Of a stretch of DNA of 64,000 nucleotides, positions 27,560 to 36,024 are shown piece after piece. Each line of letters starts with the position of its first letter. Positions within the stretch are counted from its first letter, which is position 1. Under the pieces are notes generated by a model. It ran no database searches, was not told the origin of the DNA, and saw only the letters and a program-made list of their open reading frames with translations. The stretch lies in assembly GCA_977020255.1 (NCBI GenBank), contig CDROCS010001089.1:496001-560000 (forward strand), written 5' to 3'. This stretch comes from Obrimoposthia wandeli (Eukaryota). The position numbers were made by a program, and so were the translations under genes.

Positions 27560-28271
27560 ATGCCTAACTTTCGATTTAGATGATACTTTGTGGGATATTC
27601 GACCTGTCATTAAAAATGTAGATTTGCAACTTTATCTTTGGTTGCAGCAAAATGCGCCAGCTTACACCGCCAAGTATGCTTTAGAGAACTTTGAAGCACT
27701 GCGTAAACAAGTGGTGAATGCATACCCTGAAATAGCGCACAGTGTGACAGATATTCGCAAAAAAGGGTTACAGATAGGTTTAACCAAATCTGGCTATGAT
27801 CCCCAACAGGTTGTTAAGCTGGCAGAACAGGGGTTTGAGGTTGCACTTAAAGCGCGCCAAGAAGTAAATTATTTTCCCCATGTTTGGCCTGCGTTAGATG
27901 AGCTAAAAGCGCAGGGGTACGTTATGGGCGCAATCACCAACGGTAATGCTGATATCTACAAAGTGGGGTTGCAAGACCATTTTGATTTTCAGTTTAATGC
28001 GCATGACTGTGGAGTAGAAAAACCACACCCAAGTATCTTTGAACAAATGCTAACGCATGCTGGATTATCAAGCCGACAAGTTATTCATATTGGTGATAAC
28101 CCAATTGCTGATGTACAAGGTGCACAACAACTGGGAATGTCGACCATTTGGGTAAATGTTATCACACAGCAATGGTCCCATGATTTTAATGCAGATCAAC
28201 AGATTGATTGTATTAGCGAGCTTCCAGCAGCAGTGCAAAAGATAGTGAAAGCTAGAAAGCTAGAAAGCTAG
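27552..28271 (+). CDS. HAD-superfamily hydrolase (YigB-like)
   Basis: TFDLDDTLW motif I, ITNGNAD, KPHPSIF, HIGDNPIADVQGA. The ATG overlaps the xerC stop. Confidence 0.92.
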   Translation: MIKCLTFDLDDTLWDIRPVIKNVDLQLYLWLQQNAPAYTAKYALENFEALRKQVVNAYPEIAHSVTDIRKKGLQIGLTKSGYDPQQVVKLAEQGFEVALKARQEVNYFPHVWPALDELKAQGYVMGAITNGNADIYKVGLQDHFDFQFNAHDCGVEKPHPSIFEQMLTHAGLSSRQVIHIGDNPIADVQGAQQLGMSTIWVNVITQQWSHDFNADQQIDCISELPAAVQKIVKARKLES

Positions 28272-28277
28272 AAAGCT
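28247..28277. repeat. Octamer tandem repeat (GAAAGCTA)x3.9 spanning the yigB stop codon
   Basis: GAAAGCTA GAAAGCTA GAAAGCTA GAAAGCT, read directly. Confidence 0.85.
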
Positions 28278-28406
28278 CTCAGTAGAGCGCGCCAATTGGT
28301 TTCTCACTATTCATGATCAGGGTGCTACAGTGAGGGGCGTTATAATAGCTGCTTGTTTACTCGTTACATTTTAAGAAGATAGCGCTTCTATAAAACAAAA
28401 GGCTGA

Positions 28407-29669
28407 TTAAAAGAAGTAACGAGCGGCTAGCTGAATTTGTTGCTCAGTTAGATTGGTTGAATAACCTAGATATGCTCTAGAGGGGCGAGAAGATTTTATC
28501 CAATTATACTCAGCTGAAAGTAGTAAAGGTTTTGACCAGCGGTAGGTGTAATTAAAGGTGGCCGCTTTACCGTATTCAGTATTGTTATCCCCAATAGTTT
28601 GATCATTATCAGTGACAGAAAATTCTTCTAACCTTACAGTATATTTGTGCTTTTTTACTTTACGAGACAGTGCGACAAATCCACTTCTATAATCGTTATT
28701 TACCACATCGGTGCGCTGGGGAGATTGCATTAAAGTGGAGCCTTGCAAAAGCTGCGCGCTTAATTCTAAATCTTTTGCCAAGCGCCAACGACTACCGGCA
28801 TATAAAAACTTTGTTCTCCAGCCGTATTGCCCATCAATTTCCAAATAGGGTTTTGCGCGGTTATCATAATAGCCAATTAAAAATTTACCTTTTTTATGTT
28901 GCTTCCAATCAAATTGAAAGTGATAGCCTGGGCGGTTGTCAATTTCTAAAAAGGCATTAGATTTTTTTGCTTGATGTTCAAAAATACCGCCAGGAGCAGT
29001 GGCCGGTATTGCGGGAAATGGCTGGCTTTTTCGCCAAGAACTTTGCCTGTTACTCGTCGTCCAGCCGTGCCAAGAAAGTAAAGCACCATTCGGATCATTG
29101 CTGGTAAATAAACTAGCACTGAAAGAGATATCAAAAGGGTCATCTTTTAAGCGACCTAGGCGTGTTACTTTAACTTCACTACCTAGCACTCTAGTTTCTT
29201 CCCCTATCCAAGTATTTAAGGTTGAAGAGTTTAAGGTATTGATACTTGCCCATGCAAAAGCTTCATTTTCAATTGAAATTTTTGGATAAAAGATGCCGCT
29301 TCTGTTCTCCCAGCGATAGCCTGATTCTGAGGGGATTGATTTATATTTTAGATAAGCTTCAGTGACGCCTAAACCTATTTGGTTATTTTCGATATAGCTA
29401 TTAACGACCAAGTTAGCGCTTAAGCCGTTGTCCCAAAGTAGTTGAAATTGACCTGCAAATTGAGGCAGTGCGAGTGCTGCAGATCTATCGGATGAAAACT
29501 TGCCATAGCCGCCAGAAAGATAACTGTCGATACTTTGGTTACTGGATAATCGAAAATCTAATAATCCGTTTACTTTAAATTCGCTGGCAGTAACGTAACT
29601 GACACTCGAGTAAGTTAAAAAACAGCAGGTGATAGCTTTTATTTTTCGAGATAATTTTAACATGATCAT
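28407..29669 (-). CDS. Uncharacterised outer-membrane beta-barrel (porin-like) protein
   Basis: Signal-peptide-like N-terminus, alternating amphipathic strands, and C-terminal barrel signal QIQLAARYFF; last gene of a three-gene operon. Confidence 0.7.
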   Translation of the reverse strand: MIMLKLSRKIKAITCCFLTYSSVSYVTASEFKVNGLLDFRLSSNQSIDSYLSGGYGKFSSDRSAALALPQFAGQFQLLWDNGLSANLVVNSYIENNQIGLGVTEAYLKYKSIPSESGYRWENRSGIFYPKISIENEAFAWASINTLNSSTLNTWIGEETRVLGSEVKVTRLGRLKDDPFDISFSASLFTSNDPNGALLSWHGWTTSNRQSSWRKSQPFPAIPATAPGGIFEHQAKKSNAFLEIDNRPGYHFQFDWKQHKKGKFLIGYYDNRAKPYLEIDGQYGWRTKFLYAGSRWRLAKDLELSAQLLQGSTLMQSPQRTDVVNNDYRSGFVALSRKVKKHKYTVRLEEFSVTDNDQTIGDNNTEYGKAATFNYTYRWSKPLLLSAEYNWIKSSRPSRAYLGYSTNLTEQQIQLAARYFF

Positions 29670-29694
29670 CTTTGTTTATTAAGAAAGTGAGTGC

Positions 29695-32025
29695 TTATGA
29701 AATAGTTCTTTCTTCTCGATAGCCTAATTGTAGTTTCAACCAAGAGGAAAGTTCTTCAGCGGGTTTAGGTTTACTAATAAAGTAGCCCTGCGCTTTTTCG
29801 CAGCCATTCCTTTTTAGCCAATCTAAGGCGAATTGATCTTCTATTCCTTCAGCAACAACGGTTAATCCCATATTGTGGGCAAGTTCGATTGTAGAGCGGA
29901 CAATGATCTGGTCATCAAGGTCGTGCTCTAAGCGCTGCACAAAAGATTTATCAATTTTAAGCTCATGCACAGGCAGCTGCTTTAATTGTGCAAGAGATGA
30001 GTAACCGGTTCCATAGTCATCAATAGATAAAAATATACCTAGGTTTTTGAATTTCCTAAGTAGCTCAATGGCTGATTTTGGATCATCTACTACCGCGCTT
30101 TCAGTAACTTCTAACGTGAGTCTATTCGCGTTAACATCCGCTGTTTTTAATGATAGGCGAACAAAATCAAAAAAAGCAGGGTCGCGAAAATTTTCTGCTG
30201 AAATATTGATGGCTATATTGATATCCATTCCCATTGCTAGCCAGCGGCTGTATTGCTTAATCGCCGTTCTTAATACCCAACAGGTTAAATCATTAATTTG
30301 CCCTGTTTGCTCAGCAACTGGAATAAAATCATCAGGTGGAATCATCCCCAATGACGGATGTTGCCAGCGTACCAACGCTTCCATATGCGTGATCACTCCA
30401 GATTTAAGGTCCATCTTGGGTTGGTAATACAGTATTAACTGATCGCCACTAACAGCATTTTTAAAATCATTGATTAAACTTAAACGCTCAATAGAATTAG
30501 TATCAAATTCGGCATCGTACACTTGTGTTGGCTGGCGGTTCTTACGCGTTTGATGCAAGGCTGTATCAGCCATTTGCAGTAAAATATCGACCTTACTTGT
30601 ATGTTCTGGGTAGAGTGCAATACCCATGCGTACTTGTAGTTGAAAGCAGAAGCAATCATGATCAAAAGGAGCTTTCAGTTGTTGTTGTACACTAGATATC
30701 AATTCTGAGAGGTTGCACTTATCACGCTGTTGGCTAATTAAAGTAAACTCATCACCACCCATGTGATAAGCTTTTTTAAAGCCTGGCGTATCGTTTAATC
30801 GCAATGCGGCCTCTTTGATAATTTGATCACCCACTTCGTGACCTAATGTATCATTAACATCTTTTAAACGACTTAAATTTAAATGAAAGATAGTAAAACA
30901 ATCATTGGTGCTAGACATTGCACGTAGATCATTGAGTAACATATTGCGATTTGGCAAATCAGTGAGTGGGTCGTAATTTACACTGTGCTGTAAAGCATTT
31001 TCACGCGATAGCACTGCGTTTTGCATAACATTAAACTCATTCGCTAACTGACCTAATTCACTTTTATCGCGCAGCTTTATACCTTGCGAATAATCTCCAA
31101 GCGCCACGGTTTTTACTTGTTTGACCAGTATTTTAATTGGTTTAGTGATAGAAGCTGCTACTAAGTAGGCGCCAGCTAAAGAAAATACTAACGTCGATAA
31201 AATAAGCAATAGCAGCTTTCCCCACTGCTTTTGTAAAACTTCGACCAAATCTGCTCTTAGGCCATACATAGCGACCCCAAATTGGTTGTCGTCAAAACTG
31301 CTGATCAACTGACTTTGAGCAATATAATGCTGCGGAATTTCACCTTTGACGATTTTTTTCGCTAAACTCAATTGCGCATTGTAGGCGGAGGAGGCAACCA
31401 GCTCCCATTCTTTAGTATCACGTAGAATGAAAATAGTTTCTAAACCGGTAATTTCTTTATATTTGACGGCTAAGCTGTGGTCAATTTGAAAACCAAAACC
31501 GACCCACCCTAATACCTTTGAGCCCACTTGGATAGGAGATAAACTGAGTTGATAGAGCGCACCGTTAAGTTTGTACAAATGCTCTAATGACTGATTTTTA
31601 TTGAGCCAAGAAATATATTCAAACTGTGAGTTTGTCTCTTTGCCGCGCTTTATTTTTCTATCAGCGCCTTCGCCAGTGGCAATAAGTTGAGCGCTGATAA
31701 GGCCGTTTTCGGTAATAGACATAACTAAATCAGCATTAATACGCTTGCGATGGTTGTTTAGGGCCACCAATAAACTGCGCCTATCTTCGTTAAATACTTG
31801 TTTAATACCGTAATCTTTAGAAGCAGTGGTGGAAAATGCTCTTAAGTATTTACTACGGCTATCGAATAATTCAGTAAATATGGTTTTTGCGGTGTTTAAA
31901 CGATTGCTTATCTCTTGAGCTTCTTGGTTGTTTTTACCAGACAATACTGTCCATACACCTATTAGTTGTACCAATAAGAGCAGTAAAACGAAGAATAAAA
32001 ATATTTTATTCTGTAAGCTTTTCAT
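29695..32025 (-). CDS. Membrane sensor: periplasmic domain-HAMP-GGDEF-EAL (likely c-di-GMP phosphodiesterase)
   Basis: Two TMs, HAMP (KPIKIL...ELGQLANEFNVM), YDPLTDLPNR...MGGDEF, and EAL with MEALVRW, LEVTES, DDYGTGYSSL, LKIDKSF, AEGIE, QGYFISKP. Confidence 0.92.
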   Translation of the reverse strand: MKSLQNKIFLFFVLLLLLVQLIGVWTVLSGKNNQEAQEISNRLNTAKTIFTELFDSRSKYLRAFSTTASKDYGIKQVFNEDRRSLLVALNNHRKRINADLVMSITENGLISAQLIATGEGADRKIKRGKETNSQFEYISWLNKNQSLEHLYKLNGALYQLSLSPIQVGSKVLGWVGFGFQIDHSLAVKYKEITGLETIFILRDTKEWELVASSAYNAQLSLAKKIVKGEIPQHYIAQSQLISSFDDNQFGVAMYGLRADLVEVLQKQWGKLLLLILSTLVFSLAGAYLVAASITKPIKILVKQVKTVALGDYSQGIKLRDKSELGQLANEFNVMQNAVLSRENALQHSVNYDPLTDLPNRNMLLNDLRAMSSTNDCFTIFHLNLSRLKDVNDTLGHEVGDQIIKEAALRLNDTPGFKKAYHMGGDEFTLISQQRDKCNLSELISSVQQQLKAPFDHDCFCFQLQVRMGIALYPEHTSKVDILLQMADTALHQTRKNRQPTQVYDAEFDTNSIERLSLINDFKNAVSGDQLILYYQPKMDLKSGVITHMEALVRWQHPSLGMIPPDDFIPVAEQTGQINDLTCWVLRTAIKQYSRWLAMGMDINIAINISAENFRDPAFFDFVRLSLKTADVNANRLTLEVTESAVVDDPKSAIELLRKFKNLGIFLSIDDYGTGYSSLAQLKQLPVHELKIDKSFVQRLEHDLDDQIIVRSTIELAHNMGLTVVAEGIEDQFALDWLKRNGCEKAQGYFISKPKPAEELSSWLKLQLGYREERTIS

Positions 32026-32037
32026 TAAAAAATAATC

Positions 32038-32703
32038 CTAATAATCCGAAAGGAAATCAAAGTCGTCATCGCTTTTTTGTTCGGGAATTTCGTCCATTTT
32101 CTGAGATAAGCTCATCACTATTTCTTGGTCTTTAGCAATGTTAATTTCTTTGTTTATCCTATTGTTTTTCGTATTTATTTGCGGGTGCCAAACTATAATT
32201 TTGTAGCGCCCACTGCCTTTAATGTCTAAATTAGCCTGCCCTTTTGCGTTCGTTTTAGTAAAATAAGGCGTGTCTAAAACTAATAGGTAACCACTCATCC
32301 AGTCATGCACGTTACAGCCCATTACTATTTCATTAGATTGTGCTAATTTGGGTTGTTTCACTTCTTGGCCAGGGCGAATTAAAAAAGCGAATTTTCTGGG
32401 GCCACCGGCAGAGTAAATATGGTGGGTAATGTCATCTTTGTTACTAAAAACGATTGAATTACCTGTTTGGGCAACACTGATGTAAGGGGTAAAAGATTTT
32501 TTTGCTTGAGAGATGATGATGTTCTTATTAGTTTTCCCTAAAGGTTGCTGCTCAAGTGGTTCAGCATAAACTACTACATCAGCTAAATTAACGCCGCTAC
32601 TATCTTTAACAATCACGGATAGTGCGCTAGCTACATTAACATGGAATAAAAACGCGGCTGCTAGGAAAAAACGCCAAGTTGTTGTCCTCATAAAAACCCC
32701 CAA
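32038..32703 (-). CDS. Exported cupredoxin-like protein (often labelled 'methylamine utilization protein')
   Basis: Signal peptide, SQAKKSFTPY, FSNKDDITHHIYS, GCNVHDWMSGYLLVLDTPYF and WHP; putative type-1 Cu ligands H94/95, C130, H133, M136. Confidence 0.78.
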   Translation of the reverse strand: MGVFMRTTTWRFFLAAAFLFHVNVASALSVIVKDSSGVNLADVVVYAEPLEQQPLGKTNKNIIISQAKKSFTPYISVAQTGNSIVFSNKDDITHHIYSAGGPRKFAFLIRPGQEVKQPKLAQSNEIVMGCNVHDWMSGYLLVLDTPYFTKTNAKGQANLDIKGSGRYKIIVWHPQINTKNNRINKEINIAKDQEIVMSLSQKMDEIPEQKSDDDFDFLSDY

Positions 32704-33519
32704 TCTTTATTAATTTACAATGTACCATTTTAGCTTTTTAAAAAGGAGTTGTGCATTTAAAAACGGTTAAATTATCTTTAAAAGCTATCGTACAACAATA
32801 TAACCATGGCAGATGAATGAAATATTAATACATTTGCTTAGGATTCGTTTCTAAACATGAATCACCATGCAAAATAACTGTATTGTGCAAATGTAAATTC
32901 ACTCGGTGTTGGCTGATTTCACAGTAACAATGAGTTGCCATCTTTAAGTTTAGAAAAATACAGGAGTATTACTTTGTCGTTTATTCATCATAAATACAAC
33001 AAATAATAGACTACTTACCCCGAGTTTTATAAAAACGCAGTTTGTTAAACCTATTTAAGTTTAGCAAGTTACTATCAACCGAGTAATAAGAATGGTTTGT
33101 AGACAAGTTACATCTTTTTCGTCTAATAGTAACTCAGCATTTATTGATCGAGAGCATGCTTATGGTAATTATCAGCTGTTAATATCATTAAATATTCTTG
33201 GTTCACGGCTTGTTAAGAGTAAAGGTAATAGTGTTGTTAGTTTTATTAGAATATATGATTTCAGTAAATTAAGCACAGCAGTTTATAAGGGATCATCAAC
33301 GAAGAGTCATCGGTCAAAATTTACGGTTAGACTATATATGGCTATGAAAATTTTTTATACAACTGCTAAGAGCTAAGCCGGCGTTTACAGTTTTAACCGC
33401 TCTCAACGCTGAATGTCGGACTCGTTTAAAGGTGCAAAGCAGGATCTTTACGTTTTAACCGCACCGTTATACTTACAATTACGCGCACCACTTATTGAAA
33501 ATATTCATTTGGATTTAAA

Positions 33520-36024
33520 TTGACTTTATTTTGCGACCAACTTTTTATTAGAGATATTGCCCAGCGTAACGTTGCTAGCTGTGCACCTACTCTACCCATT
33601 AAAGACGCTGCTAAGATGATGCATAGACGGCGCTGTAGTTCTATTGTCATTGTTGATGATGGATACCCAGTCGGTATTTGGACAGAAGCTGAGGCACTTA
33701 AGCTCAATTACAGTCAAATTAAAGATGCAAATCGGCCTATAAATAGCGTGATGAACGATCAGATTTGTACTGTTGACGCTGGTTTAGAAGTGAGCCAAGT
33801 TGCGCTAAAGTTTAAAATATTGAACACGACACATTTAGTTGTTTTAAATCATGATAAAACAATGTTTGGCATCATTAGCCAAACAGATATGGTAGTTAAC
33901 CAAGATGCTAATAATTTTTTAACTATCGTTGAATTAGGCGCCGTTAAAAGCACCCAGGCACCTTGTATGGATAGCGACACCCCTATTAGTGATATTGTTG
34001 ATAATATGCGCCGTTTTCAATGTGATGCATTGATTATTAACTGTAAAGGCAAATCACAAGGAATTGTTACTACCCGAAATTTAGTGCGCGCGATCTCTTT
34101 AAGTCAAACGCAACAAGCGGTTAGCTGTATTATGAGTCAATCATTGATAAGTGCTCCAGCATCAATGAATTTACTGGCTGTTCGTTCGTTGATGGTCGAA
34201 AAACAAATTAGGCACATTGGGGTTGAAAATGAACAGGGAGTGGCTTACAAGCTCATCTCATTTTCAGATATTTTAGTCAGCATAGATCACAGTTACAATA
34301 CAAGATTACACTTGTCATTAGAGCATAAAGAACTAAGACTGCAAGTTGCGGAACGCCACTTACATATCGCAAATGCTGTTATTAATGCTTCAAGTGATGG
34401 CATTATGATGACGAATGAAAAAGGCATTATTGTCTCTATCAACCCTGCTTACACTAAACTTACAGGCTACAGTTATGACGAAGCGGTTGGTCAGTCATCA
34501 AGTTTGACCAGTTCAGGAAAACATAATGCGCAGTTTTATCAGGATATGTGGCGAGAGATGGCTGATAAAGGGGTATGGCAGGGTGAAATATGGAACCGCA
34601 AAAAAAACGGAGAAATATATCCTGAATGGCTGACCATTAATAAAGTGTTAGAGCCTTATACTGGAAAAATAATGTATTCAGGGGTTTTTAGCGATGTTTC
34701 TGAGGCTAAAAAATCAAAGGAAACTATTGAAAATTTAGCGTATTACGACCCTCTCACCGAATTACCTAATCGCCAATTACTGCTAGATAGATTAGATGTT
34801 GCTATTAACTTAGCGCAACAAGAAGAATTTAAGCTATCTGTATTATTGATAGATATAGATAACTTTAAACAGATCAACGATTCATTAGGGCATTTAGTGG
34901 GCGATAACGTACTCAAAGAAGTCGCGCTAAGGTTGAACGATAGTATTACGCCTGGTCGAACTTTAGCGCGTATTGGTGGTGATGAGTTCATTGTATTATT
35001 TAACTATCAGAATATTAATCAAGTTTCAGATAAAGCGCAGCGTTTGTTAGATTCACTGAAGGTTCCCGTACAAGTGAATGATAGTAAATTTCTGCTAACG
35101 TTAAGTATTGGCTGCGTGCTCTACCCTAATGATGGCGAGAACCAAACTGATTTGATAAAGAATGCTGAAACGGCGATGTATAGAGCTAAAGCACAAGGGC
35201 GCAATAGGTTTTGTATGTATTCTCCGGATATGAATGCTCAGCATAAAGAGCGCTTATTGATGGAGTATCAGTTAAGGGAGGCATTAAAGAATCAAGAATT
35301 CCAGCTTTTGTATCAGCCAAAAGTGTGTCTAAAAAAAGATAAGATAGTCGGTTTAGAGGCGTTAATACGCTGGAATAACCGGGTATTAGGGAGCGTATTA
35401 CCCGATCAATTTATCTATCTTGCTGAAAACCTTGGCTTGATACCAGATATAGGCCATTGGGTTATCCGTGAAGCGATAGAGCAGGCCGCGTTGCTGCAAC
35501 CCTTAGCTAAAGAACCTATTGTCATCTCTGTTAATGTATCGGCTAAACAATTCATCAAAAATCAGCTGGTAGATCAGGTAAAACAAGCGCTTAGCGATTT
35601 TAATTTTGATCCTAAATTGCTAGACATTGAAGTGACAGAAAGCTGCTTAATTGATAATGTGTCTTTAGCTTGTGAAAATTTACAAACTTTAAGAGCTTTA
35701 GGCGTGCAAGTATCACTAGATGATTTTGGCACAGGTTATTCAAGTTTGAGTAAACTAAATCAACTGCCTTTAGACACACTAAAAATAGATCGCAGTTTTA
35801 TTAATGAAGTGCCAGGCAAGCAAGCATCACAAGCTTTGGTATCTACTATTATATTTTTAGCTCATCAGCTTAATTTAAAAGTGGTTGCTGAAGGTGTTGA
35901 GAACAGTAAACAACAGCAGTTTTTAAAAGAATTAGATTGCGAGCAAATGCAAGGTTACTATTTCAGTAAGCCGGTTAGAATCGAGAAAATTTACGCCATG
36001 CTTGAAAAGCAAAAAACGCATTAA
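33520..36024 (+). CDS. Cytoplasmic CBS(x4)-PAS-GGDEF-EAL protein
   Basis: Two CBS pairs (VGIWTEAEA, GIISQTD, GIVTTRN, LISFSD), PAS (SINPAYTKLTGY, WQGEIWNRKKNGEIYPEW), ARIGGDEF, and GLEALIRW...DDFGTGYSSL...AEGVE...QGYYFSKP. Confidence 0.92.
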   Translation: MTLFCDQLFIRDIAQRNVASCAPTLPIKDAAKMMHRRRCSSIVIVDDGYPVGIWTEAEALKLNYSQIKDANRPINSVMNDQICTVDAGLEVSQVALKFKILNTTHLVVLNHDKTMFGIISQTDMVVNQDANNFLTIVELGAVKSTQAPCMDSDTPISDIVDNMRRFQCDALIINCKGKSQGIVTTRNLVRAISLSQTQQAVSCIMSQSLISAPASMNLLAVRSLMVEKQIRHIGVENEQGVAYKLISFSDILVSIDHSYNTRLHLSLEHKELRLQVAERHLHIANAVINASSDGIMMTNEKGIIVSINPAYTKLTGYSYDEAVGQSSSLTSSGKHNAQFYQDMWREMADKGVWQGEIWNRKKNGEIYPEWLTINKVLEPYTGKIMYSGVFSDVSEAKKSKETIENLAYYDPLTELPNRQLLLDRLDVAINLAQQEEFKLSVLLIDIDNFKQINDSLGHLVGDNVLKEVALRLNDSITPGRTLARIGGDEFIVLFNYQNINQVSDKAQRLLDSLKVPVQVNDSKFLLTLSIGCVLYPNDGENQTDLIKNAETAMYRAKAQGRNRFCMYSPDMNAQHKERLLMEYQLREALKNQEFQLLYQPKVCLKKDKIVGLEALIRWNNRVLGSVLPDQFIYLAENLGLIPDIGHWVIREAIEQAALLQPLAKEPIVISVNVSAKQFIKNQLVDQVKQALSDFNFDPKLLDIEVTESCLIDNVSLACENLQTLRALGVQVSLDDFGTGYSSLSKLNQLPLDTLKIDRSFINEVPGKQASQALVSTIIFLAHQLNLKVVAEGVENSKQQQFLKELDCEQMQGYYFSKPVRIEKIYAMLEKQKTH

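Follow-up and report, generated by a model that had tools for sequence, protein, structure and literature searches.

Does a small exported copper-type protein, encoded beside a membrane c-di-GMP enzyme and an outer-membrane barrel, act as the input of one envelope-spanning sensor? The question is raised by three adjacent open reading frames, g1-g2-g3, on the minus strand of the analysed window (the whole stretch of 64,000 nucleotides). The original prediction, made from the sequence, read them as an uncharacterised trans-envelope module coupling copper or periplasmic redox state to c-di-GMP breakdown; the same frames and the same tight intergenic gaps, 12 and 25 bp, were recovered here. The operon promoter presumably lies in the upstream region of g1, where no ORF of more than 94 aa and no Rfam match was found. 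One weak promoter-like site is present on the minus strand at 32755-32727, and such sites are not enriched in this region relative to shuffles. GC is 0.353 for 32001-34000.

Table 1. Features of the g1-g2-g3 locus, in window coordinates.
Feature	Coordinates	Strand	Description
g3	28407..29669	-	420 aa; signal peptide; predicted 16-strand porin-like beta-barrel; C-terminal RYFF
g2	29695..32025	-	776 aa; predicted 2-TM inner-membrane dCache_3-HAMP-GGDEF(degenerate)-EAL protein
EAL domain of g2	29767..30471	-	residues 519-753; Pfam 249.8 bits; catalytic set complete
Degenerate GGDEF of g2	30535..30978	-	residues 350-497
Periplasmic dCache_3 domain of g2	31276..31914	-	residues 38-250; PF14827, 41 bits vs cut-off 25.7
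g1	32038..32703	-	221 aa as listed ORF; predicted exported, two-part protein with disordered acidic tail
Disordered C-terminal tail of g1	32041..32085	-	residues 207-221, ending FDFLSDY
Predicted type-1 copper site of g1	32296..32424	-	H94 at 32422-32424; loop C130-N-V-H133-D-W-M136 at 32296-32316
Upstream region of g1	32704..33519		816 bp, AT-rich, non-coding; common to divergent CBS-PAS-GGDEF-EAL gene

Components of the locus

The listed frame of g1 opens with TTG at 32703, and an ATG at 32691 (residue 5 of the listed ORF) fits the N-termini of homologues. The ATG is probably the true start, with the TTG unused; from it the protein has 217 aa and a Sec signal peptide that ends after ASA, before L. 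Residue numbers given throughout are those of the listed 221-aa ORF with the TTG start. The protein comprises a cupredoxin core (~60-143) and Ig-like beta strands (~145-198), perhaps with residues 25-50. As a whole it matches no Pfam or NCBIfam family at cut-off, and residues 59-146 give no Pfam cupredoxin match (Copper-bind, Cupredoxin_1 and the like) even at E<=10. The AlphaFold2 model (pLDDT 86) predicts a Greek-key cupredoxin beta-sandwich, and Foldseek against the PDB returns amicyanin, pseudoazurin, plastocyanin and purple cupredoxin with a probability of 1.0 and a target-normalised TM of up to 0.7.

A profile of the g1 family matches the cupredoxin domain of PDB 9cck, a copper nitrite reductase (NirK), at E 0.013 and places H94, C130, H133 and M136 on its ligand pattern, so that His, Cys, His and Met fall at the canonical type-1 positions. 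These four residues are invariant in the g1 proteins of 78 species from several phyla, and H95 is kept in 74 of the 78; because the loci were retrieved with patterns from two g1 ligand blocks, the apparent conservation of those blocks is inflated. The motifs first singled out in the original prediction, H94-H95, C130-x2-H133-x2-M136 and DDDFDFLSDY, are all present and invariant across 36 homologues. C130 is the sole Cys of the mature protein. We infer copper binding from this ligand set and consider g1 a putative soluble periplasmic protein of the blue-copper type.

The tail of g1 has a pLDDT of 37-49 over its last ~15 residues, and the model is devoid of secondary structure beyond residue 198. 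Every locus of the marine three-gene clade nevertheless carries [DE]F[DE]F[LI]xxY in this tail, and the terminal Tyr is kept in 45 of 45 close and 29 of 33 distant homologues. Homologues of the cyclase clade described below have a basic RRAP..GGY tail in place of the acidic motif. Because the segment is disordered yet conserved, as short docking motifs are, we count it in favour of a docking role, most likely toward the dCache_3 domain of g2. A crude test of charge complementarity between the tail and the periplasmic domain of the sensor was negative, which we counted against an envelope-spanning device.

Pfam places a HAMP domain at residues 288-337 of g2, in addition to the domains of Table 1. 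The dCache_3 domain lies between hydrophobic segments at ~8-28 and 268-290 in a hydropathy scan, and the periplasmic domain lacks any Cys. This agrees with the 2-TM sensor with HAMP, GGDEF and complete EAL of the original prediction, as does the state of the GGDEF domain: the motif itself is present, but the metal-binding Asp is replaced by N383 and the Arg before the motif by H421. The domain also lacks an RxxD I-site, and thus g2 does not carry the combination of GG[DE]EF, metal Asp and Arg expected of an active diguanylate cyclase. No NCBIfam equivalog reaches its cut-off; DgcN/YfiN matches the HAMP-GGDEF part only, at 110 bits against a cut-off of 325. Among 60 orthologues the two GG positions drift (G42/S13/W3 and G33/A20/S5), while the full catalytic and metal-binding set of the EAL domain (E549, N607, E639, E642, D669, D670, K690, E726 and Q746) is invariant in 60 of 60. 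We counted this difference between the two sites in favour of the device. The prediction for g2 is a c-di-GMP phosphodiesterase whose GGDEF domain is non-catalytic.

g3 matches no Pfam or NCBIfam family and thus has no curated porin match. PF07642 occurs in only a few of its homologues, which databases name 'hypothetical' or 'porin'. Its AlphaFold2 model (pLDDT 92) has ~16 long strands, and Foldseek returns OmpT/OmpU, chitoporin, PorB, Omp32 and OprP with TM 0.5-0.56 and E 1e-13 to 1e-10. The C-terminal R-Y-F-F recurs as RY[FY]F in relatives. Model, structural matches and sequence together point to a 16-strand barrel with a C-terminal aromatic signal, as in porins, in keeping with the barrel ending in YFF that had been proposed.

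Conservation of the gene neighbourhood

The original prediction proposed conservation of the neighbourhood as a check. Complete g1-g2-g3, in the same order, is found at 43 of the 80 species loci fetched, all but one from marine Gammaproteobacteria. Median projected gaps at these loci are 17 and -16 nt, and the divergence of g1, g2 and g3 is correlated (r 0.75-0.85). Recurrence of the motifs and of the gene order in dozens of genera puts the pattern far beyond chance. The three genes thus behave as a unit. The original interpretation is supported only in part. g3 is not universal: it is missing at 14 complete g1 plus GGDEF-EAL loci (e.g. L046, L070, L072) and at all cyclase-type loci, an absence counted against the device.

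Among more remote lineages, namely Verrucomicrobiota, Beta- and other Gammaproteobacteria, Nitrospirota and Desulfuromonadaceae, the gene directly downstream of the g1 homologue still encodes a dCache_3-HAMP sensor, which ends in GGDEF-EAL at some loci and in a class III nucleotide cyclase at others. As outer-membrane partner these lineages have an unrelated protein of ~290 aa, which at cyclase-type loci is outer-membrane-like and occupies the place of g3, or none at all. We scanned 18 complete g1-adjacent sensors, each with a g1 homologue directly upstream; HAMP was found in all 18 and dCache_3 in 17. The output beside g1 is GGDEF-EAL in the window, L051, L052, L069 and L072, and a class III cyclase in L049, L050, L057, L059, L061, L066, L067, L071, L076, L078 and L080. 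By tblastn, the dCache_3 domain of g2 is homologous to the cyclase-type sensors. On the g1 tree the two outputs are interleaved, L058 (EAL) and L076 (cyclase) being sisters with support of 96/81, and therefore what is conserved is the pairing with the sensor domain rather than with the output. As a pair, the cupredoxin and dCache_3 form a conserved input module to which different outputs can be attached. That g1 homologues pair with dCache_3-HAMP sensors of either output argues that g1 feeds the sensor domain.

At two loci, L048 and L075, g1 and g3 occur but a dCache_3 sensor does not, so g1 and g3 may also serve a separate function as a pair; these loci too were counted against the device. 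At some betaproteobacterial loci the gene immediately upstream of g1 codes for an exported truncated globin (L052 and L053) or for an NTF2-like protein, which fits a multi-protein periplasmic sensing assembly.

A proposed envelope-spanning sensor and its alternatives

We lean, by somewhat more than an even chance, toward g1-g2-g3 as an envelope-spanning input-output device in which g1 is a co-sensor controlling the phosphodiesterase and g3 its outer-membrane partner. The EAL domain of g2 would be active, the degenerate GGDEF at most regulatory, and phosphodiesterase activity would be set through the periplasmic dCache_3 domain and the HAMP linker. g1 would act in the periplasm as copper-loaded or empty, or as Cu(I) or Cu(II), and pass this state to dCache_3 by direct contact, with the tail as docking element. 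g3 would be a dedicated porin-like partner, serving either as entry route for the stimulus or as anchor for g1. As a result c-di-GMP breakdown would change, shifting the balance between motility and biofilm. Beyond copper binding, we infer every contact between the proteins, what is sensed (copper load, or redox, O2 or oxidant state) and in which direction regulation runs. The rigidity of type-1 copper sites makes it hard to see how a redox change would be transmitted; this was counted against the device. No published account of this module was found, and the presence of g1-g2-g3 in dozens of marine bacteria suggests an envelope-spanning sensor that has gone unstudied.

It is possible, if doubtful, that the signal is specifically redox, O2 or an oxidant. 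In this reading a small oxidant or a carrier in the periplasm would exchange electrons with g1, whose Cu(I)/Cu(II) state would tell the sensor about respiratory or oxidative status. g1 has the ligand set of electron-transfer cupredoxins, including an axial Met and a short C-x2-H-x2-M loop like that of amicyanin, the exported globins upstream of g1 in L052 and L053 would suit such a role, and CSS-domain phosphodiesterases, in which EAL enzymes are under periplasmic redox control, provide a precedent. However, no gene for a redox partner lies nearby, reduction alters the structure of blue-copper sites little, and the porin is given no obvious role.

A copper-specific version, in which g3 admits copper, apo-g1 captures it and the resulting holo form acts as a switch on the phosphodiesterase, seems unlikely to us. 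It would account for the complete and invariant ligand set, for a dedicated porin gene adjoining g1 and for the persistence of g1 with g3 where the sensor is absent (L048, L075), and if true it would mean that copper stress or scarcity alters biofilm behaviour. The window genes scanned at 15.5-41 kb nevertheless include no copper-homeostasis genes of the cop, cus or cue type, and the globin or NTF2-like partners of betaproteobacterial g1 homologues speak against metal sensing. To our knowledge, moreover, a type-1 site normally takes up its copper a single time and does not serve as a reversible metal sensor.

We find it improbable that g1 and g3 are instead a metabolic or transport pair, for example in substrate oxidation or uptake at the outer membrane, with g1 outside signalling and g2 merely a neighbour or a sensor of the pair's substrate through its own dCache_3 pocket. 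dCache domains do usually bind small ligands themselves, and L048 and L075 show the pair without a sensor. Yet g1 sits beside dCache_3-HAMP sensors across phyla, even where g3 is absent or the output differs, and no conserved enzyme partner for an electron carrier is encoded nearby.

Database sources name g1 homologues 'Methylamine utilization protein', and MauL is presumably classed as cupredoxin-like in CDD. MauL is an accessory protein of methylamine utilisation (PMC2474590), but the label had already been called unsupported, and a role for g1 as a MauL-type maturation factor of methylamine dehydrogenase clusters is very hard to credit: at 15.5-41 kb of the window there is no mau gene and so no methylamine dehydrogenase cluster around g1, the g1 neighbours scanned in the 80 fetched loci are recurrently dCache_3 sensors and barrels and include no mau protein, and most hosts are marine heterotrophs.

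Comparison with known systems

g1 has the predicted fold of amicyanin, pseudoazurin and plastocyanin (Foldseek probability 1.0), and its His...Cys-x2-His-x2-Met spacing is that of amicyanin. It differs from them in its extra Ig-like part, its conserved tail, the lack of a Pfam cupredoxin match at E<=10, the second, nearly invariant His that follows the ligand His, and in having its gene beside those of sensors, not of redox enzymes. Likewise, g3 shares with the general porins (OmpU/OmpT, PorB, Omp32, OprP) its predicted fold, strand number and C-terminal aromatic signal, but it is only 9-13 % identical to them, is longer by ~80 residues, which lie in extended loops (128-160 and 190-247), and, unlike them, is encoded within a signalling operon.

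In CSS-domain EAL phosphodiesterases such as E. coli PdeC, periplasmic redox controls a membrane EAL enzyme through the disulfide of the CSS domain itself, whereas the Cys-free periplasmic domain of g2 would need a separate copper protein. In LuxP-LuxQ of Vibrio, a double-PAS/Cache-type periplasmic domain reads a bound partner and not the signal itself; unlike g1-g2-g3, this pair has a histidine kinase output and an AI-2 solute-binding partner, and neither a copper site nor a porin. NspS-MbaA of Vibrio cholerae resembles g1-g2 in having the partner gene directly upstream of a membrane GGDEF-EAL gene, and NspS sets MbaA activity through the periplasmic domain, the same role that we propose for g1 on g2. 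NspS, however, is a polyamine-sensing solute-binding protein and g1 a cupredoxin of metalloprotein type. The system lacks an outer-membrane component, and MbaA, described as polyamine-regulated and bifunctional (bioRxiv 10.1101/2025.02.13.638143), contrasts with the degenerate GGDEF of g2.

YfiBNR (TpbB) of Pseudomonas aeruginosa and HmsCDE of Yersinia pestis resemble g1-g2-g3 in logic and not by homology: as here, three genes of one envelope-spanning operon supply a protein of the outer membrane, a regulator that is soluble in the periplasm and, in the inner membrane, a c-di-GMP enzyme with a periplasmic sensor domain and HAMP. YfiB, however, is an OmpA/Pal-like lipoprotein and g3 a predicted 16-strand porin; YfiR is not a cupredoxin; and YfiN, whose periplasmic domain is PAS-like, is a diguanylate cyclase that lacks EAL, where g2 is a predicted phosphodiesterase of dCache_3-HAMP-GGDEF-EAL architecture.

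The g1-g2-g3 operon and its conservation

Three minus-strand genes make up the operon: g1 encodes an exported cupredoxin-type protein, g2 an inner-membrane protein with two transmembrane segments, and g3 a porin-like outer-membrane barrel. They are separated by gaps of only 12 bp (g1/g2) and 25 bp (g2/g3). Housekeeping genes flank the operon, with lysA, dapF, a DUF484 gene, xerC and a HAD hydrolase gene on one side. On the other, beyond an AT-rich spacer, lies a divergent CBS-PAS-GGDEF-EAL gene followed by LysR, MFS, HemN-like and Ham1 genes. Rfam searches of 28200-33700 returned no riboswitch or other known RNA at E≤1, and scans for promoters and terminators gave candidate sites not above the level of shuffled sequence and no noteworthy internal terminator. 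The spacer, which holds no ORF longer than 94 aa and no Rfam match, may be a site of complex regulation or encode an undescribed RNA.

Features of the operon and its upstream side (positions in the window)
Feature	Position	Strand	Description
g1	32038-32703	-	ORF, 221 aa as listed
g2	29695-32025	-	ORF, 776 aa
g3	28407-29669	-	ORF, 420 aa
Non-coding spacer, g1 to divergent GGDEF-EAL gene	32704-33519	.	816 bp, GC ~0.35, unusually long
Divergent second c-di-GMP gene	33520-36024	+	CBS-PAS-GGDEF-EAL, 834 aa; strong matches to both catalytic-domain models

Scanning one genome per species, we found a g1 relative in at least 589 species and examined the best 80 loci. Utilizing tblastn, g1, g2 (periplasmic domain, GGDEF and EAL) and g3 were complete and in the same order in 43 of these best 80, in support of the three-gene unit proposed in the original prediction; further cases are interrupted by contig ends. 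Complete loci occur in Colwelliaceae, Shewanellaceae, Pseudoalteromonadaceae, Psychromonadaceae, Oceanospirillaceae, Endozoicomonadaceae, Cellvibrionaceae, Vibrionaceae, Kangiella relatives (Aliikangiella) and one member of the Lysobacteraceae. The projected junctions are short, with medians of 17 and -16 nt, and the pairwise divergences of the three proteins correlate (r 0.75-0.85). In Aliamphritea spongicola JCM 16668 (AP025283.1; L063:8001-12207) all three genes are present, each split over several reading frames, reflecting either pseudogenization of the whole operon or assembly indel errors. There is no constant fourth gene in the best 80 loci. The sole loosely recurrent neighbors are further genes of GGDEF/EAL type, present within 4 kb of g1 in 20 of these loci, a recurrence that may be due to chance where genomes have many genes of this kind.

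Predicted properties of the three proteins

No Pfam or NCBIfam model matches g1 at cut-off, and neither g1 nor g3, searched as single sequences, has a significant match among PDB chains. A word search returned 334 g1 relatives, mostly unnamed or called "hypothetical", "plastocyanin", "cupredoxin domain-containing" or "Methylamine utilization protein". The last label, already judged unsupported in the original prediction, finds no mau gene beside it at 15.5-41 kb of the window, and it is very unlikely that g1 acts here as MauL, the accessory protein that the label suggests.

Invariant across 36 aligned relatives of g1 are, among others, H94, H95, C130, H133 and M136, together with the block M-G-C-N-x-H-D-W-M-x-G, W172-H173-P174-Q175 and a terminal F-x-x-x-S-x-Y; among the fetched loci, the apparent conservation of the two ligand blocks is biased, as patterns from both were used for retrieval. 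An AlphaFold2 model from the same alignment has a mean pLDDT of 86, falling below 50 at a disordered end (218-221). At probability 1.0, the PDB entries that Foldseek matches to the model are all cupredoxins, namely amicyanin, pseudoazurin, plastocyanin, a purple cupredoxin and the NirK cupredoxin domain. A profile search of PDB sequences gave a marginal match (E 0.013) to the C-terminal cupredoxin domain of the copper nitrite reductase 9cck, pairing H94, C130, H133 and M136 with that domain's His, Cys, His and Met. The C-x2-H-x2-M spacing matches that of amicyanin, and C130 is the sole Cys of mature g1. The type-1 ligand set proposed for g1 is therefore real and lies within the right fold, and we infer that g1 binds copper. 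Residues 145-190 also weakly match the latter half of models for Ig-like domains, CarboxypepD_reg among them. The cupredoxin may thus be an insertion in an Ig-like domain whose first half is formed by the N-terminal strands (25-49), a tentative idea, since Pfam searches with g1 fragments gave weak Ig-like matches from the C-terminal half only. The ATG at 32691 is likely the true g1 start; start codons across the fetched loci were assigned mechanically.

Pfam divides g2 into dCache_3 (38-250), HAMP (288-337), GGDEF (350-497) and EAL (519-753), and no NCBIfam equivalog comes near its cut-off. Across 60 g2 orthologs from g1-linked loci, all catalytic and metal-binding EAL residues are invariant. 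The metal-binding Asp position of the GGDEF domain is Asn in 36 of these 60 and Asp in 16, the Arg position preceding the motif is His in 38, and both Gly positions drift. This pattern bears out the complete EAL and atypical GGDEF originally noted. We therefore predict that g2 works as a phosphodiesterase and that catalysis is not what its GGDEF domain is retained for. It is not a CSS-type redox sensor, because its periplasmic domain contains no Cys.

No curated family was found for g3 in Pfam or NCBIfam. Its model, built from 32 sequences (pLDDT 92), has about 16 long strands and long loops at 128-160 and 190-247, and Foldseek aligns it with general porins (TM 0.5-0.56, identity 9-13 %). Relatives are named "hypothetical" or "porin", a few of them carry PF07642, and the C-terminal RY[FY]F is kept, in agreement with the barrel ending in YFF that was originally noted.

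Distant relatives with other outputs and partners

The g1 tree resolves two clades, each with support of 100/100. Clade A is the marine g1-g2-g3 group and includes the window. Clade B brings together Verrucomicrobiota, Beta- and other Gammaproteobacteria, Nitrospinota, Nitrospirota, Desulfuromonadaceae and Gemmatimonadota, implying horizontal spread. Its g1 genes are followed by a dCache_3-HAMP protein whose output is GGDEF-EAL in some loci and a class III adenylate/guanylate cyclase in others (at the betaproteobacterial locus L064 the output domain is lost to a contig end), and the outputs are interleaved on the tree, as in the sister loci L058 and L076 (support 96/81).

Partners vary as well. 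Directly upstream of g1 in most cyclase-type loci lies an ORF of about 290 aa with weak outer-membrane barrel (OMP_b-brl) signals. It forms its own family, present in 10 distant loci (including L049:7145-7993, L050:7040-7987, L067:7094-7993 and L076:4445-5341) and without a Pfam match at threshold. Homology to g3 was rejected (hhalign probability 3.6 %), so that these proteins are at most analogous partners. In Betaproteobacteria, truncated (bacterial-like) globins with apparent signal peptides lie directly upstream of g1 at two loci (L052:7410-7883 and L053:1242-1799); such exported globins are themselves unusual and hint that the module may sense gases or redox state. Exported SnoaL/NTF2-like proteins, overlapping the g1 start by 4 bp at two further betaproteobacterial loci (L055:7474-7962 and L064:7495-7947), look like a third kind of accessory partner. 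Several loci with g1 and GGDEF-EAL have no g3, and the ~400-aa neighbors at two loci, L046 and L070, proved unrelated when considered as a hidden g3. The cupredoxin and dCache_3-HAMP are thus the stable pairing, around which output and outer-membrane partner vary.

At L058, the place that g3 has in the marine clade is taken by a DUF3034 protein (L058:11037-11909; Pfam E 5e-106), whose reading frame shares 4 bp with the end of the g1-linked GGDEF-EAL gene. At L062:7980-10328, a g1 homolog and a dCache_3-HAMP-cyclase form a single 782-aa ORF. We rejected a natural (Rosetta-stone) fusion and do not count it as evidence, because, relative to L078, the usual tail and stop are missing, and because the Cache domain of such a fusion would end up on the cytoplasmic side; it is probably an indel or assembly artifact in a long-read MAG.

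The g1 tail differs between the clades, being acidic ([DE]F[DE]F[LI]xxY) in clade A and mostly basic (R-R-x-P...G-G-Y, then zero or one residue) in clade B. The last residue or its neighbor is a Tyr in 45/45 close and 29/33 distant proteins. Disorder is predicted for this segment, and conservation combined with disorder at a chain end is characteristic of docking motifs. Acidic tails pair almost wholly with g3-type barrels (exceptions L046, L070 and L051), a pairing confounded by phylogeny. A crude test of charge complementarity between tail and sensor periplasmic domain gave no support (Spearman -0.10, p 0.44, n=67).

Possible signals and relation to known systems

Our functional statements are all predictions, made from sequence, modeled folds and genomic context. 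In the best reading, g1 would serve as a periplasmic co-sensor for the dCache_3 domain of the predicted c-di-GMP phosphodiesterase g2, with g3 as their putative outer-membrane partner. The signal may be copper load, as favored by the ligand set of g1 and the porin g3, or it may be redox, O2 or oxidant state, as favored by the electron-transfer-type site of g1 and the globin partners. It is also possible that g1 and g3 serve a separate metabolic role; in two Alteromonadaceae loci (L048 and L075) g1 is followed directly by a g3-like barrel, without a dCache_3 sensor.

Extending the co-sensor reading, we tentatively propose, as possible rather than probable, an input module that spans phyla and moves horizontally, and in which a blue-copper protein works as a signaling receptor and not in electron transfer. 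A dCache_3-HAMP transducer would read the metal or redox state of this protein, perhaps with the conserved Tyr-terminated tail docking into the Cache pocket or the barrel as a tethered ligand. The module would be wired either to breakdown of c-di-GMP or to synthesis of cyclic nucleotides, and its outer-membrane partners would differ between lineages. If so, surface copper or redox conditions would be tied to cAMP/cGMP signaling in Verrucomicrobiota and, in Colwellia, Shewanella, Pseudoalteromonas and Psychromonas, all abundant marine bacteria, to decisions about biofilm, and a misleading "methylamine utilization" label on hundreds of proteins would be corrected. A type-1 copper protein acting as receptor would be a new job for one of the best-studied metalloprotein folds.

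To our knowledge, c-di-GMP enzymes carry many periplasmic sensor domains, most without a known signal; genome context here gives a concrete, testable input for a whole class, the dCache_3-HAMP sensors of at least 589 species-level genomes. Searches of freely available full texts yielded no paper linking a cupredoxin with a c-di-GMP or cyclase sensor. The partner-protein logic of NspS-MbaA, LuxP-LuxQ and YfiBNR is well established. The proposed g1-g2-g3 module would follow the same logic with parts unrelated to theirs: it would be partner-protein-controlled periplasmic sensing by second-messenger enzymes, with a type of partner that is unprecedented.
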